Of a stretch of DNA of 64,000 nt, positions 782 to 56,954 are shown one piece after another (positions within the stretch are counted from its first letter, which is position 1; every line of letters starts with the position of its first letter). The notes beneath the pieces were generated by a model. The model was not told the origin of the DNA. It did no database searches and saw nothing but the letters and a program-made list of their open reading frames with translations. The stretch is taken from the NCBI RefSeq assembly GCF_000143415.4, contig NW_003314361.1, positions 531,697-595,696 on the forward strand, given 5' to 3'. Source of the DNA: Selaginella moellendorffii. Its lineage: Eukaryota > Plantae > Lycopodiophyta. Both the position numbers and the translations under genes were made by a program.

Positions 782-3334
782 GTATATATACCTTCTTATA
801 GAAGAGAAATTCCATCTAGTGAATATGTTCTATATAGGCAAAGTTATATAACTACTCTAGTAAGAGTTATAGCTCAATTTTTGCATATGTTAAATCACCT
901 TATGTGCTAATCAAACTTTTGCTAAACGAAGCAGTCGAGAGGATTTATGCCATAAATGCAAAACAAAGAGCTGTAGGCTTGCTACTAAGCGTATGCATCA
1001 ACCTTGGAGATATTGTTAGTATCACTTTAATCTTTAAAGAACTCGAACAAGCTTGGAGATATTAGAAAAGGGTTTTGTCTAAAAAGGTGAAATAGCTTCA
1101 GACACTTCTAGAAATTCTAAAATATATTATAAATTTAAAAAAATTATCATACAAGCTTGAACAAAGACTTGTATTGACCATAACTACCTGTTAGCGAAGA
1201 GGTTAGTGCGAAATTTACCTTGAAAAATATTTTTTATCTAAATCTGAAGTAAAGTCTTCCACAAATTAGCTATCACTTGTTTGAAATGTTACCTAATGTC
1301 ATTCTATAAGCAAATTGATTTAGAATAGGCTATCATGTGCTAAACAATTTGACCTTTATATTAATTCCACAGGATAATTTCATACATTGGTTTCTATGCC
1401 CCATTCAAATTAGTCTCTAGTATTGATCCATTTAAAAATGGTTTGCCTAAAATTTGCCAAGAGTGATAGGCCACTCTTTTTAATTTCACAGTTGTAAAGG
1501 CAAGGTTGGATATAATCCAGACCCACTGTGAAGCAAAAAGTTATTTTGGATTTAGTTATCACACGTCAAAAACCTTGCACTAAATTAATCTTAACCACAC
1601 TAGGTATGGGCAAAAAGGGAAAGTCCTCTTATACACTTAAGTGGAGAAATTGAGGATTGATGACCTTCTATAGTCCTGATAAAAGTTGAATGAGGGAATT
1701 GGGGTAAAAAAAACAAGAATGTTTATTAGCGATCCACCACATTTATTAGAAGATACATTTTTCTTATAGACTCAGACAGAAGTTGGTTAATCCCCACTTT
1801 ATGTGACTAAGCAAAAGTATAAGAAAGCAAAAACTAAACTATCTCGTGTGCCTAACTAAGCTAGCAAATGATAGATTTAACAAAACTACTTAAACAATTC
1901 GACAAATTATTGAGTGAAATATTTAACAATATTTTGTTTAAGGTATACAGAAGTCTGACTCTTAGTACTTTTACTATTGATAAAGAAGGTGTGATAATAC
2001 ATCTAAATTACTTTGTAGGTACATAATGTAAGCAAGAGAGTTATTTATACAAAAATAAAATAGTACTAGAATTTTTCATAGACAAAGAGATAGTCTGCCT
2101 ATTTGAGATAGATGCAAATTCTGAATATTATAATCTGTAAAGGATTTATAAATTTCTTCCTATTAGATAATTGTTAATATTTTATGCAATATTAGGCAAA
2201 TAAACTATTGTAGAAACTTTAACAATTCACAATAAAACTTGGATACCCATAAGAAGAAATACACTTGCTAATAATTTAGCTAATAGACATTGAATCAATT
2301 CTAAATCTGGATTGATAGGCAACAAAATTTTGTGGAGTAAAAATTTCTTAAGGTGGACCACACTTAAGTAAAATAAATATGCTGTGAAAAATATTATTTG
2401 CTGCTCAAGAAATTTTTAGATCTTTCATATAAGAAATATCCTAGACATTTGGCCTCTACAGGAAAACCATCCCCATTTCAAGATTTAATGTTCAGCTAGG
2501 TTTTGCTCTTAAGAGTGATTGATAAGCTAATTACAAGGAGAATACATTGTATACCAAAACTTTGTACCACTCACTCTATGAATGAGGCATAATAACTAAG
2601 CTTGCTATAGTAGCAATGCTAACAAACCTCAAAATATATAAACATAGACGAACAATTGATCTTATCTATAAAGCTTTAAAGGGCATAATCCCTATACATA
2701 AAATTGTCATTGTTTATACCAAATAAGGTGATAAATATACAAAATTTCCCTCACAATCTGATGAGTGGAAGGCAGTCTGAAAAAAAGTATTCACAAAATC
2801 TAGAACGAGATTATAAAGCACTTGCTCATGATATTTGCATTGTTAACCTCCCTTTAGAACAGACTAAATCATTTCTCAACCAAGTTAAAGAAAAGCTTGA
2901 AAGAGAATGAGTGAAAGCATATTGGGTACATCTCGGTGAAGAGGAGATTAAAAATCCCAATACGATTTTGACGGTCATCTAGAATATATGAATCCATATA
3001 CTACTCTTCTTTGGCAACATTGGCATATAAAAAACATTTTTACTTCAGTTGAGAGTAGTGGAATATAAAAAAATTAGAATGATTCCCCACAAAAGGAAGA
3101 AGAGCTAAATTTACAGCCCTTACCTCTCTAACAATGATCTAAGTTCCCTTATGAACCAAATACCTATTTTGCCTATATTAATTGCAAATTAAAGCATTTG
3201 TTGTCAAATTGTAATAAACACAATAGCAATTACAAGAATGGTAATAGACACCGTCATTACATATCCATCCTTTTTTGGAAATTGAAGAAGAGGACCTATA
3301 ACTGAATATTGAGCAATACACAGAAGCAATCAAA

Positions 3335-3850
3335 CTCAATCACGCAGATAGGTAGGAAAAGAATCTTTTCCCCTATACACTAAAAAAAAAGGCCAAAAAC
3401 TGGTACTATGATAATGATGTCAAAAAACTTGGCACATTTTATGAGTACATAACATTTTTCCTTAAAGCTTTCTCTATGGAAATAAACCTAAGATAAAACT
3501 ATAGTGAGTTGCAAAAGTTTCATCAAAGAAAATCCGAGACAATCAAAGAATATACAACTCGATTCAACAAATGTTATAAGCATTATAAAGAACTCAATTA
3601 CGCAAATGGGTAGGAAAAGAATCTTTTCCCTTATATACTCAAAAACAAAGCCAAAAACTGGTACTATAACAATAAACTCAAAAAGTTTGGCATATTTGAT
3701 GAATAAATAAAGTTTTTCTTTAAAACTTTCTTTATGAAAACAAACCCAAAAGAAAACTATGATGAGTTGCAAAAGTTTTATAAAAAAAAATTGAGATAAT
3801 TGAGGAATATACAATTTAATTCAACAAGCGTTATAAGCATTATAAAGACT
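3335..3850 (+). mobile_element. Degenerate retrotransposon gag (capsid) segment, tandemly duplicated (about 258-bp unit x2)
   Basis: Both units read approximately RIFPYILKNKAKNWYY...F...ENYDELQKF..K.ETIKEYTTRFNK, a Retrotrans_gag-like pattern with stops and frameshifts. Confidence 0.65.
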
Positions 3851-5201
3851 TAGTCTCAGATAAAATATGCCTATATCTATATATACAGGGCTTCAAAAAA
3901 ATTTATCATAAACATGCAATAAAGACAGTTTATATAGATTTTGATGACTTGAAAAAATATATGATTGCCTACCATAATCTCATAAAACAATATGAAATGG
4001 TAGATATGGTGAAGTTAAATGAAATGATGACTCTTATAAATAAGGAAACTAATCATCTAAGAAGCCTCAAATTGTAAATCAATCTCAAACAAAAAATTTG
4101 GTATACCAAATGAGGCATAGCAAGGTGATAAACAATTGAAAATCTCTTGCGAGTTTAAACCAAAAGATAAAGTCCTTTAGTATCAAGGCAAAATAGGCTC
4201 GTGGAAATAAATTCAAGAAAAAATGAAATAATCCATTGATTTTATTTAAGATATCAACTCCAAAAACAATTGAAGTGCACACCTTAAACAAGGACAATAT
4301 TGCAATATTAAATTTAATCTGTTCAAGGAAGTACCATGAAGATATAAACATAAATATTGTCTATATCTTAAAGTACAAATTATGGATAAGCTCATGAATG
4401 AAGCCCTCACAAGAATTTATCGTGATGAGCTACCTAAATGCATAAATAGAGTGGCCAATTGAATGAAAGAAAGGGGTCTAAAAAAATTCTACAAAGCTAT
4501 ATCAAACTTTGTAGAACCATAGGAAGCCAAACTGGTTTTTCAATTATAAGATCTTATAAAAATAGCTTTCAAAATGGATGGAGGGGATATTAAGATCACT
4601 CAAGATCTTATTTCTAAGCTTTTCTACCTCCCTATAGAGCTAGAACAAAGGAATTGAATAAAAGAAATAATATTTCCTGATAAAATCATATAGGGATCTA
4701 TTCATTTAGAACAGAGGGAAAATATATGTCCCTTGGGAAAGATTCATTTTTATGCTAAAGAAACCCTTATATATTTGAATGCTTTCTTTGATAGAGAAGT
4801 TCCAAGGAAAGAAATCAAAAGATACATTAGATAGATATTTCTTTCTCTAGAGCAAGCCTTCCTTCAAAATCTTGTTGGTATGGTATATAAAAATTTTCTT
4901 TAAGCAATATAAGATTTAGAGGAAAAGAAAAGAAAGGGTAAATACTCTAAGAGTAACATTTACATTTTTCTTGCCCAATTCTATAAACTCTGTTAACAAA
5001 CCATAAGGATTAATAAGTAGAGATTACTAGACCAATAAGAAAAATAATTTTTCATAATACATTTGCATACAAAAACAAATAAAGGCAAAAGGACAAAATT
5101 TAAGGCTAACGTAGTAAGGTAGGGCAATCTAGGTAATTTGGAAGTAACTAGGGAGATTCTTTTTCTCTCTCGCTCTTAACTTCTCACTCACTCTACCGCC
5201 A

Positions 5202-52909: not shown

Positions 52910-54498
<1,589 letters not shown>

Positions 54499-54526
54499 CT
54501 AGACCAGCTTTCGTTGTAGAGAACCG

Positions 54527-55708
54527 CTATTTCTTGAAGCTCTTCTTCTTCACGTAAACCGTAAAGCTACCTGGAAACTCGTAAGTTCCATCTCTCAGCT
54601 CCCTCTGCGTCTTGTAGAACCAGTCCATCTTGATGTTGTCGATGGGTATCGTCGTGCAATCTGTACCCGGTCCCATCTTTCTGGCCTTCACCACCCTGTA
54701 AGCGTAGAGCAGCACGTCGATGTCCGAGATATACTCGATCGTGTTCCTGTAAATCCCATCCGCATCCGGCTTCATGGTCGACAGCTTCGCTTTCACTCGC
54801 TCGATGTGAGGATCCGAGGAGAAGAAGCGAGGCGTGTAGTCGTACTTGTTTGCGATCCTCAAGTACTTGTCTAGCTCCCCGCGGAAGTATCTCATCCTCT
54901 CCTCGCTGGTGGCGTTCTTGGGCATCGTCTTGTAGTGCAAGCTCTCGTTGGGATTGGGATCCAGTCCACTTCGTTGGCCCTTGGGACGATCCCTCACAAA
55001 GTCGAGATCTTCGTCCTTGACATCCGTGGTCATGCTAAACTGGCGCTTGAGCTCGGCCCACTTGTCGAAAGGTATGTCCCCTCGCAGCTTCTCAACGTCG
55101 AAGTCATCAACGTCCAAGTCGTCGTCCTTCTTCCTCTTCTTCGGCATGGAATCGTGTTGCTTCTTCATCTCGATCCAGTCCTCGTACGAAACTCCAGCTC
55201 TCGCGAACGGCGAGAACTTGTAGTCCGTCGAGAAGGAGTAATCCACGTCCTCGTCGTCCTCCGTGTCCACCTCCGAGTCCGAGCTGGGCTTGTAATTCTT
55301 GTCGAAAAAGCCGTAGAACTTTGTCTCGGTGGTGGGCTTCGGGAACTCGTAAGTTGGATCCAGATTCTTGGCGCCGTCCGGATCCTCGTCCCATACCTCG
55401 GGATCGATATCCAAGTCCTCATCGTCGTCCACTTCCTCTTCTTCATCGAAATCCTCGCTATCGCTACGCGAGTAGCTGCGGGAAAAACCTGGAATAAAGA
55501 AAATCCATATCTAAGGCCGGATCAAAAATTTCTTCACGCATACCGAGTGATAGAGACGATGGAATCGTGGCGATCGCGCCGCGCATGGACCTGTGCGGCT
55601 AATCCATTCAGACCTAGGCGCTAGAAAATCCGAAAAGCTGCTCGCTTACCTTGCGATCGACAATGTAGGGCGATAGCGCCATGGAAGTCGCCATAGCCGC
55701 GCTAGCAT
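54527..55708 (-). CDS. Putative mitochondrial 355-aa protein: presequence, acidic region, C-terminal group II intron maturase RT0/RT1-like module
   Basis: Exons 55708-55650, 55590-55544 and 55488-54527 join in frame (1068 nt, GT-AG introns of 59 and 55 nt). Starts MLARLWRLPWRYRPTLSIARSMRG...FSRSYS; ends DGIYRNTIEYISDIDVLLYAYRVVKARKMGPGTD...IDNIKMDWF...LRDGTYEFPGSFTVYVKK. Confidence 0.8.
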
Positions 55709-55724
55709 TGAGCTTGGCGAAATA

Positions 55725-55801
55725 AAACCCTACACCCTCTCTTCCCTGCCACGTCGGAGGCTATCCAAATTGCTAATAGGCAATCCTCAAGTCCACGTGG
55801 C
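55725..55801. promoter_or_regulatory. Bidirectional promoter elements: telo-box and G-box
   Basis: AAACCCTA at 55725, GCCACGT at about 55748 and CCACGTGGC at about 55793, between divergent ATGs at 55708 and 55962. Confidence 0.5.
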
Positions 55802-55961
55802 AGATTGCGAGTGGCCGAGAGCATTGAAAGAAATCTTCATACTATGCCACAGAAGTGAATTTGTGGCTGGGCAGCGCGCAAAGACAAGCTCGTTGCTCGC
55901 GCTCCCTAGGGTTCTTAGCGCCGGCATTCTCGATTCCCATCGTTCGATCGCTCGATCGAGC

Positions 55962-56954
55962 ATGGCAGCCGCCGTGGTGGCCACAGGGATCGACGCCGCC
56001 ACCAGCTGGAAGCAGCAGCTGGTGTTTGGGAATGGCATCAGGGTTTCCAGCTCCTCCGCCGCTCTGCCATCGCCGCGCAAGGTCTCCAGATTCGTGGTGA
56101 GGGCCACATCGGACAAGCCAGCCACGGTAATGTGGTCCTTCCCCTGTTTCATCGATGCTATGCTACATTGTGGAAATTTGGAGAGATTGATGGAGATGTG
56201 CTCGTTCTTGTGTGCCAGAAAGCGAATAGGCAGCTGTGGTTCGCGTCGTCGCAAAGCTTGTCCTACCTAGATGGAACGTAAGCTCTCTAGAATCCATTCC
56301 ATTCGTGAAGAGTTTGATCGATTCCTGGACAGGCTTCCCGGAGACTATGGCTTCGATCCCTTGGGCCTCTCCGACCCGGCGGGAGCTGGAAACTTCATGA
56401 CTCCCAACTGGTTGTCCTACGCGGAGATCATCAATGGCCGCTACGCGATGCTGGGAGCCGCGGGAGCCATCGCTCCGGAGATCTTTGGCAAGATTGGGAT
56501 CATCCCACAGCAGACTGCAGTGGTGTGGTTCAAGACCGGCGTCTTCCCTCCCGCTGGAACTTACAACTACTGGGCCGACCCCTACACCTTGTTCTTCCTG
56601 GAGATGGCGCTCATGGGCTTCGCCGAGCACCGGCGAGCGCAGGACTACTACAAGCCCGGCTCCATGGGGAAGCAGTACTTCCTGGGATTCGAGAAGTACC
56701 TGGGAGGCTCGGGGGATCCAGCGTACCCGGGAGGGATCTTCAATCCTTTTGGATTCGGCAAGGACGAGAAGTCGATGCGGACGCTCAAGATCAAGGAGGT
56801 GAAGAATGGGAGGCTGGCGATGCTGGCGATTCTGGGCTACTTCATCCAGGCACCCTTCACAGGCGTCGGTCCGTTCCAAAACTTGCTCGATCATCTCGCG
56901 GATCCATTCGCGAACAACATCCTCACGAACTTGAAAGTTTACAGCACTTTCTAA
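55962..56954 (+). CDS. LHCA3: Photosystem I light-harvesting chlorophyll a/b protein, type III
   Basis: [83 protein letters not shown]. Confidence 0.96.

Follow-up and report, generated by a model that had tools for sequence, protein, structure and literature searches.

The question raised by this locus is whether a protein that holds little more than the first subdomain of a group II intron maturase can be a working gene product, and in which process it would take part. The gene lies in the nuclear genome of Selaginella moellendorffii, on the minus strand (55708..54527) of a 64,000-nucleotide stretch of contig NW_003314361.1 (positions 531,697 to 595,696), hereafter the window. It has three exons and two GT..AG introns and encodes 355 amino acids; splicing of both introns gives a clean coding sequence of 1068 nt that starts at an ATG at 55708 (Table 1). 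The preliminary description had proposed this frame, with two short introns that the open reading frame track had missed, and it is borne out by the sequence, the NCBI model and transcript contigs. The best protein match of the product is the NCBI entry ‘uncharacterized protein LOC112343584’ (P0001, 355 aa, 98% identical). The two proteins differ at 8 residues because P0001 represents the other haplotype: it is encoded on scaffold GL377731.1 between the same neighbours, with a chlorophyll a/b-binding (LHC) gene, the 355-aa gene, an alpha-tubulin gene and an IQ-domain gene. That haplotype of the locus forms a separate 208-kb scaffold (GL377731.1 19711-26892) with identical gene order. Over the 1182-nt gene, the haplotypes show 22 differences and no indels.

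Table 1. Features of the 355-aa gene and its product, in window coordinates.
Feature	Position	Strand	Basis or remark
Whole coding span, ATG to stop	54527..55708	(-)	LOC112343584, allelic copy
Exon 1, codons 1-19 + 2 nt	55650..55708	(-)	sequence; joint in transcript contigs
Intron 1, 59 nt, GT..AG	55591..55649	(-)	absent from contigs of runs X1, X2
Exon 2, 47 nt	55544..55590	(-)	sequence and transcript contigs
Intron 2, 55 nt, GT..AG	55489..55543	(-)	absent from contigs of runs X1, X2, X5
Exon 3, including stop TAG (54529-54527)	54527..55488	(-)	sequence and transcript contigs
5' UTR	55709..55734	(-)	contig ends 55728 (X1), 55734 (X2)
3' UTR, overlapping the 3' end of the convergent alpha-tubulin gene	54441..54526	(-)	contigs to 54499 (X1, X2) or 54441 (X5); exact end uncertain, strand not being readable from a contig
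Residues 1-44, putative organellar presequence, Arg-rich, acid-free, ending SRSYSRS	55463..55708, interrupted by both introns	(-)	composition
Residues 45-261, acidic, aromatic-studded, mostly predicted disordered	54812..55462	(-)	pI 4.3, net charge -30; pLDDT mostly <50
Residues 262-355, RT0/early-RT1-like module, pI 9.5	54530..54811	(-)	TIGR04416, maturase matches, hhalign, tblastn, pLDDT
Residues 268-351, best-supported module core	54542-54793	(-)	homology searches

The gene is expressed and spliced. The stretch is present in 20 public runs from 8 studies, in most of them with ~0.75 of its words, the share that a spliced mRNA should give. Contigs from 3 runs of 3 different studies, placed on 54300-56000, carry both splice junctions and lack exactly the 55-nt and 59-nt introns; the missing stretches have CT..AC ends on the plus strand. 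The runs are presumed to be RNA, and contigs without introns that are otherwise identical to an intron-bearing genome can hardly be anything else. Run X2 bears a different organism code; its contig has 0 other letters over 54499-55486 and 55648-55734, and the code may come from different labelling, or the species may be the same one listed under a second name.

These contigs also show where the coding sequence ends. Those of runs X1, X2 and X5 cross the stop codon unspliced, to 54499 or 54441. A potential donor site just before the stop (CCAG|GTAGCT, near 54570) is unused, the contigs showing no joint there. Hidden downstream exons or a nested tubulin gene were ruled out by the transcripts, the list of open reading frames over 46-53 kb and tblastn. 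When the full-length maturases P0009 and P0011 were searched by tblastn against the 64-kb window, they matched at 54551-54784 only, and no other reverse transcriptase piece (RT2-7) or X domain was found; the same type of search found no RT2-7 or X-domain piece near the paralogous gene LOC9642249. Since transcripts cross the stop and tblastn yields no further RT or X piece, the truncation of this maturase-like protein is real. The preliminary description had argued that the alpha-tubulin gene leaves no room for more exons. This holds: the tubulin stop codon (54496-54498, plus strand) lies 28 nt from that of the 355-aa gene, and the contigs run unspliced through the latter.

The flanking genes are close on both sides. 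The intron-bearing alpha-tubulin gene (52952-54498, plus strand) is convergent with the 355-aa gene, and transcript contigs of the two overlap at 54441-54528, their 3' UTRs being therefore mutually antisense. On the other side, the LHC gene (55962-56954, plus strand) is divergent from the 5' end of the 355-aa gene. The start codons of these two genes are only ~250 nt apart, for which reason they may share one bidirectional promoter.

In the protein, an N-terminus rich in Arg and free of acidic residues leads into a long tract that is acidic and disordered, and a basic module of ~85-94 residues forms the C-terminus. The first two parts had been described correctly from the letters of the sequence: the first 44 residues contain 8 Arg (18%), 9 Ser and no Asp or Glu, with RSYS in their last residues, and the middle is very acidic, as its isoelectric point confirms. 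The presequence-like region contains an amphipathic segment, LARLWRLPWRY (muH 0.80). Within the acidic tract, a KKRKK run occupies residues 152-156, and residues 192-261 are alignable with the S. moellendorffii paralogue P0002. The protein ends in KKKSFKK, without the K/R-rich tail of 15-30 residues that most family members carry.

The single-sequence AlphaFold model has a mean pLDDT of 41, and with a 40-sequence alignment residues 290-350 reach a pLDDT of 82-90, forming two helices and an extended end. A Foldseek search of this 40-row model, an excised helix pair in a largely disordered protein, against the PDB found no match at E<=1, and an exhaustive VIA fold search with the same largely disordered model returned Z<=3.6, mostly for a single helix at residues 209-255. 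No meaningful fold match is expected, because the helix pair sits excised in a largely disordered model.

Sequence comparison identifies the C-terminal module. An exhaustive phmmer search of 1.84 billion representative proteins returned 12 proteins at E<=1e-3, and the matched maturases include P0004 (2e-5), P0009 (797 aa, 3e-4) and P0011 (881 aa, 4e-4), the last being fused to a cox1 exon. In Pfam, P0009 and P0011 comprise RVT_1, Intron_maturas2 and HNH, and the fragment P0004 comprises RVT_1. The stretch matched by the window protein spans 60-147, 241-317 and 103-185 in the three maturases, where RVT_1 starts at 146, 316 and 181, respectively; the match in each stops at the first RVT_1 residue. 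The claim that the protein ends at the IPK-equivalent position is upheld, and the protein comes to its end where RVT_1 opens in P0009, P0011 and P0004. The window protein itself gave no Pfam match at E<=10, either with the whole ORF or with the last 87 aa, RVT_1, GIIM and Intron_maturas2 all being absent; this blank is explained by the start of RVT_1 just past the matched segment. The sole NCBIfam match was TIGR04416 (group_II_RT_mat), over profile positions 3-62 of 353, with E ~0.04 and a score of 13 bits against a cut-off of 300. The same profile is matched in the same register, independently, by P0002 and by P0003 of Diphasiastrum.

Profile comparisons that leave out the window protein lead to the same result. 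The family C-terminal profile A4, built without it, had one PDB match at E<=10, to residues 34-97 of LtrA, and its comparison by hhalign with an alignment of maturase N-termini gave a probability of 99.2% (E 9e-20, 86 columns). The hhalign of the window protein against alignment A5 is biased, A5 having been assembled from the protein's own matches, and was not relied on. When the last 86 aa were compared by tblastn with 72,556 plasmids, 11 weak matches resulted. At least 5 of them (three loci and their twins) proved to be group II intron RT N-termini; 2 further ones are annotated ltrA, and two Pantoea matches share their alignment. Neither phmmer of the last 101 aa against the PDB, which found no match, nor an ESM Atlas feature search with the window protein, which returned noise, contributed further. 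The motifs common to the window protein and the maturases are a DG.Y..(I/L).E..S lead-in, a D.L..AY..(V/I)K helix, PG.D..T, WF, L+DGTY.F.P and (V/I)Y(V/I).K, the last of which takes the position of the RT1 motif (V/I).IPK.

A likeness arising by chance or from composition could be argued from the lack of any Pfam match and from a single-model E of only ~0.04. It has a negligible probability and is in practice refuted by whole-library E-values of 2e-5 to 4e-4 against bona fide maturases, by a constant register that ends at the start of RVT_1, and by the hhalign and LtrA results obtained with the window protein excluded. The likeness of the module to maturase N-termini is far beyond chance, and by sequence comparison the last ~85 residues are homologous to RT0 and early RT1 of mitochondrial-type group II intron maturases, in agreement with the assignment originally made for the final ~80 residues. 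Among the features of a group II RT/maturase, the RT0/N-terminal extension is present. Three defining features are not found: RT blocks 1-7 (fingers/palm, with the catalytic YADD) are absent, with no RVT_1 match at E<=10; the X/thumb domain is absent, with no room for it past residue 355; and the gene does not reside in group II intron domain IV, since it occupies a nuclear locus with two spliceosomal GT..AG introns. The 355-aa protein is therefore outside the maturase family proper. Because the catalytic RT blocks, the thumb/X domain and the endonuclease are all missing, it is neither a reverse transcriptase nor a self-sufficient maturase.

Far from being an orphan, the window gene belongs, as a fast-evolving paralogue, to a family of similarly built short proteins. 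The phmmer search also recovered P0002 (342 aa, E 1e-21), which S. moellendorffii encodes at another locus, LOC9642249, and whose likeness begins ~70 residues before the module, as well as short proteins ending in the same module from the lycophyte Diphasiastrum (P0003, 273 aa) and from ferns. A profile of the lycophyte and fern members reached more ferns (Ceratopteris, Adiantum) and four angiosperms, and a profile of the angiosperm members reached at least 333 protein clusters. The angiosperm proteins are about 265-330 aa long and 65-80% identical from monocots to eudicots, and all are ‘uncharacterized’ or spuriously named, for example as nucleolin. They have no Pfam family, and their profile matches no PDB chain, which argues against a subunit of a known complex.

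Family members share an acid-free N-terminus, often with a conserved RSYA/RSYS motif, an acidic aromatic-rich tract and an RT0-like module, and they end at most 30 residues from the IPK position. The window protein fits this build in being short (about 205-365 aa in the family), in its acid-free N-terminus followed by an acidic tract, and in its C-terminal ~90-aa module truncated at the RT1 IPK. It differs in lacking the long basic tail present in P0002, P0003 and most fern and angiosperm members. LOC9642249 is likewise built of three exons, its two short introns interrupting the presequence region. This paralogue, located at GL377565.1 4887516-4894674 (gene at 3001-4159 therein) and provided with a long basic tail, is nearer than the window gene to the Diphasiastrum protein and is the better match to P0009 (tblastn E 4e-14). 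In the angiosperm orthologues (A3 columns ~150-400), three LW(T/S)GS(D/E)(E/D) repeats and a nearly invariant DKLFEFEE.PKYRT block stand upstream of the RT0 module; neither is matched in the Selaginella protein. Acidic or unrelated residues take the place of the RT0 loop PG.D..T in fern and angiosperm members, and the flanking helices are kept.

In a maximum-likelihood tree of the module, the family is separate from maturases (91/81), with the lycophytes basal and the ferns sister to the angiosperms; the branch of the window protein is 0.64 long and that of its paralogue 0.29. The branching order agrees with the species tree and indicates vertical descent from one truncation event that preceded the divergence of vascular plants. 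As all members share one truncation point, domestication of a maturase gene's 5' end most likely happened a single time, ahead of the divergence of vascular plants. Past the IPK-like position, the tail of P0003 (residues ~245-265, I.KK..G.GK...AP.D) resembles the rest of RT1 (IPK.NGK.RPLGI..PRD), which hints that the ancestral truncation may have fallen just after RT1. Bryophytes, gymnosperms and algae were not among the matches of our word-based searches, which cannot show absence. The proposal of ‘possibly an undescribed class’ stands in that the family has no name, Pfam family or PDB chain in the databases consulted; it does not stand as a Selaginella oddity, the family being old and widespread.

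A decaying relic, that is, a truncated nuclear copy of a maturase transcribed by chance and without function, could account for a fragment of a larger ancestral protein whose window copy evolves faster than its paralogue. Selection speaks against it. The haplotypes are separated by 10 synonymous and 8 non-synonymous codon changes (allelic dN/dS 0.18), with the frame intact in both; half of the eight amino-acid changes fall in the first 32 residues and a single one, a conservative R/K exchange, in the module. Spliced transcripts occur in many runs from 8 studies, and the same truncated build has been kept in lycophytes, ferns and angiosperms, with the high identity among angiosperms given above. 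The gene is under purifying selection, and a relic is highly improbable. The earlier proposal of a domesticated, RT-less fragment of a group II maturase fits the homology, the truncation, the expression and the existence of lycophyte, fern and angiosperm orthologues under purifying selection.

Concerning its location, the protein is probably mitochondrial, judging from its N-terminus. Composition and motif suggest a mitochondrial presequence cut near RSY|S, an R-3-like site. Alternatively, the protein would be an acidic one of the nucleus or nucleolus, its basic runs serving as nuclear localisation signals and its N-terminus being no presequence; the KKRKK run and the K/R-rich tails of orthologues sometimes auto-named ‘nucleolin’ could be read in this way. 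We give this alternative little credence, since acid-free, Arg/Ser-rich and poorly conserved N-termini (17-57 residues) occur family-wide and are followed by the RSYA/RSYS motif typical of cleaved mitochondrial presequences, and the ‘nucleolin’ names stem from acidic low-complexity matches.

The best overall explanation of these observations is a domesticated RT0-only protein, putatively an organellar accessory factor in intron splicing, to which we assign a probability of about 0.55. Canonical maturases dock on intron domain IV, with high affinity and specificity, through their N-terminal subdomain RT0 (PMC9321910, PMC13172542). Because RT0 anchors canonical maturases on domain IV, the basic RT0 module of the mature protein could bind the RNA of organellar group II introns and/or a resident maturase whose RT0 is missing or degenerate, and through this binding the protein would assist splicing as an accessory factor. 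The basic RT0 surface may be modulated or masked by the acidic tract. For any role at all in organellar group II intron splicing, we would offer even odds at best. The ancestral RNA contacts may have been lost, given the replacement of the PG.D..T loop in ferns and angiosperms, and the window copy may have drifted in function, given its missing basic tail and its long branch.

The degenerate loop with its flanking helices kept, together with a large disordered tract, acidic and rich in aromatic residues, that keeps its character throughout the family, would also suit an RT0 module repurposed away from intron splicing and maturase-derived by descent only. Such a protein could serve as an adaptor between proteins, as a chaperone of basic proteins, or in the organelle as an RNA or nucleoid/ribosome-biogenesis factor, and there is a precedent in MatK, whose degenerate RT region became a protein-interaction platform (PMC13172542). 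Yet none of the solved structures, those of plant mitoribosomes and respiratory complexes among them, has a family member as one of its chains, the only recognisable domain derives from a splicing factor, and no specific alternative is indicated. Repurposing seems rather unlikely to us.

A stronger form of the splicing hypothesis supposes a maturase split between two genomes, in which the nuclear RT0-only family supplies RT0 and the first RT1 strand in trans. Plant mitochondrial maturases would then be heteromers of an RT0 subunit and an RT/X subunit, and the part supplied would be the module that MatR reportedly lacks and that is degenerate in nMATs. In Selaginella, each of the two RT0 paralogues would work with nuclear maturases of its own. 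The mitochondrial DNA of S. moellendorffii has 37 introns, none with an ORF, and no matR, its nad1i728 holding nad4L instead (PMC5654404). Eight nuclear maturase loci are reported for Selaginella, and all mitochondrial maturases of S. moellendorffii are stated to be nuclear, according to the passages of PMC3927076 that cite Guo & Mower 2013. We consider such a split improbable.

Dozens of degenerate group II introns in plant mitochondria and plastids depend for their splicing on maturases whose RT0 is reported as lost or degraded. In bacterial systems RT0 provides tight and specific docking on the intron. A nuclear-encoded, strongly conserved, probably organelle-targeted protein that is nearly RT0 only is a candidate for the missing docking function; should its function differ, it would be a clear example of how a piece of a retroelement protein can be domesticated and put to new use. 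In practical terms, hundreds of ‘uncharacterized protein’ entries in crops are without a Pfam model, and naming the family and testing one orthologue would annotate all of them.

Four known systems can be compared with this protein, nearest among them the nMATs and the pair MatR and MatK. First, the likeness to LtrA (PDB 5G2X) and TIGR04416 covers residues ~268-351, which align with LtrA 34-97 and TIGR04416 3-62. Compared with LtrA-type RTs, the window protein is devoid of the fingers/palm past the first strand, of YADD, of the thumb and of the DNA-binding or endonuclease domain, and its gene has spliceosomal introns instead of being intron-encoded. Secondly, nMAT1-4 are likewise nuclear genes derived from mitochondrial group II intron ORFs, which bear organellar presequences and whose RT0 belongs to the same mitochondrial-type lineage. 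The 355-aa gene is also a nuclear gene of maturase descent, its presequence being putative and suggested by composition and the RSY|S motif. However, the nMATs (~700 aa) keep degenerate RT1-7 and the X/thumb domain, the seat of their splicing function, whereas the 355-aa protein has neither; its sequence closes at the RT1 IPK and includes an extended acidic tract that is absent from maturases. Thirdly, MatK was recently shown to function in a heteromeric complex with nuclear-encoded partners (PMC13172542). This MatK-MKIP1-EMB3120-ValRS2 complex is a precedent for an RT0-less plant maturase that works with nuclear-encoded proteins (PMC13172542), although these partners (a branching-enzyme homologue and others) are unrelated in sequence, are plastidial and have no known link to the RT0-only family. 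Our literature searches found no paper on an RT0-only plant protein or on a MatR partner of this kind. The membership of this gene in an RT0-only family that extends from lycophytes to angiosperms is new here. Finally, MatR (mat-nad1i728g2) and MatK are degenerate organellar maturases that act as general splicing factors. Both are reported to be without RT0, and the RT0 surfaces of nMATs are described as degenerate (PMC9321910, PMC13172542). By published description, MatR and MatK are thus the mirror image of the RT0-only protein, as RT0 is missing from them and the later RT motifs and the X domain are kept (PMC9321910, PMC13172542).
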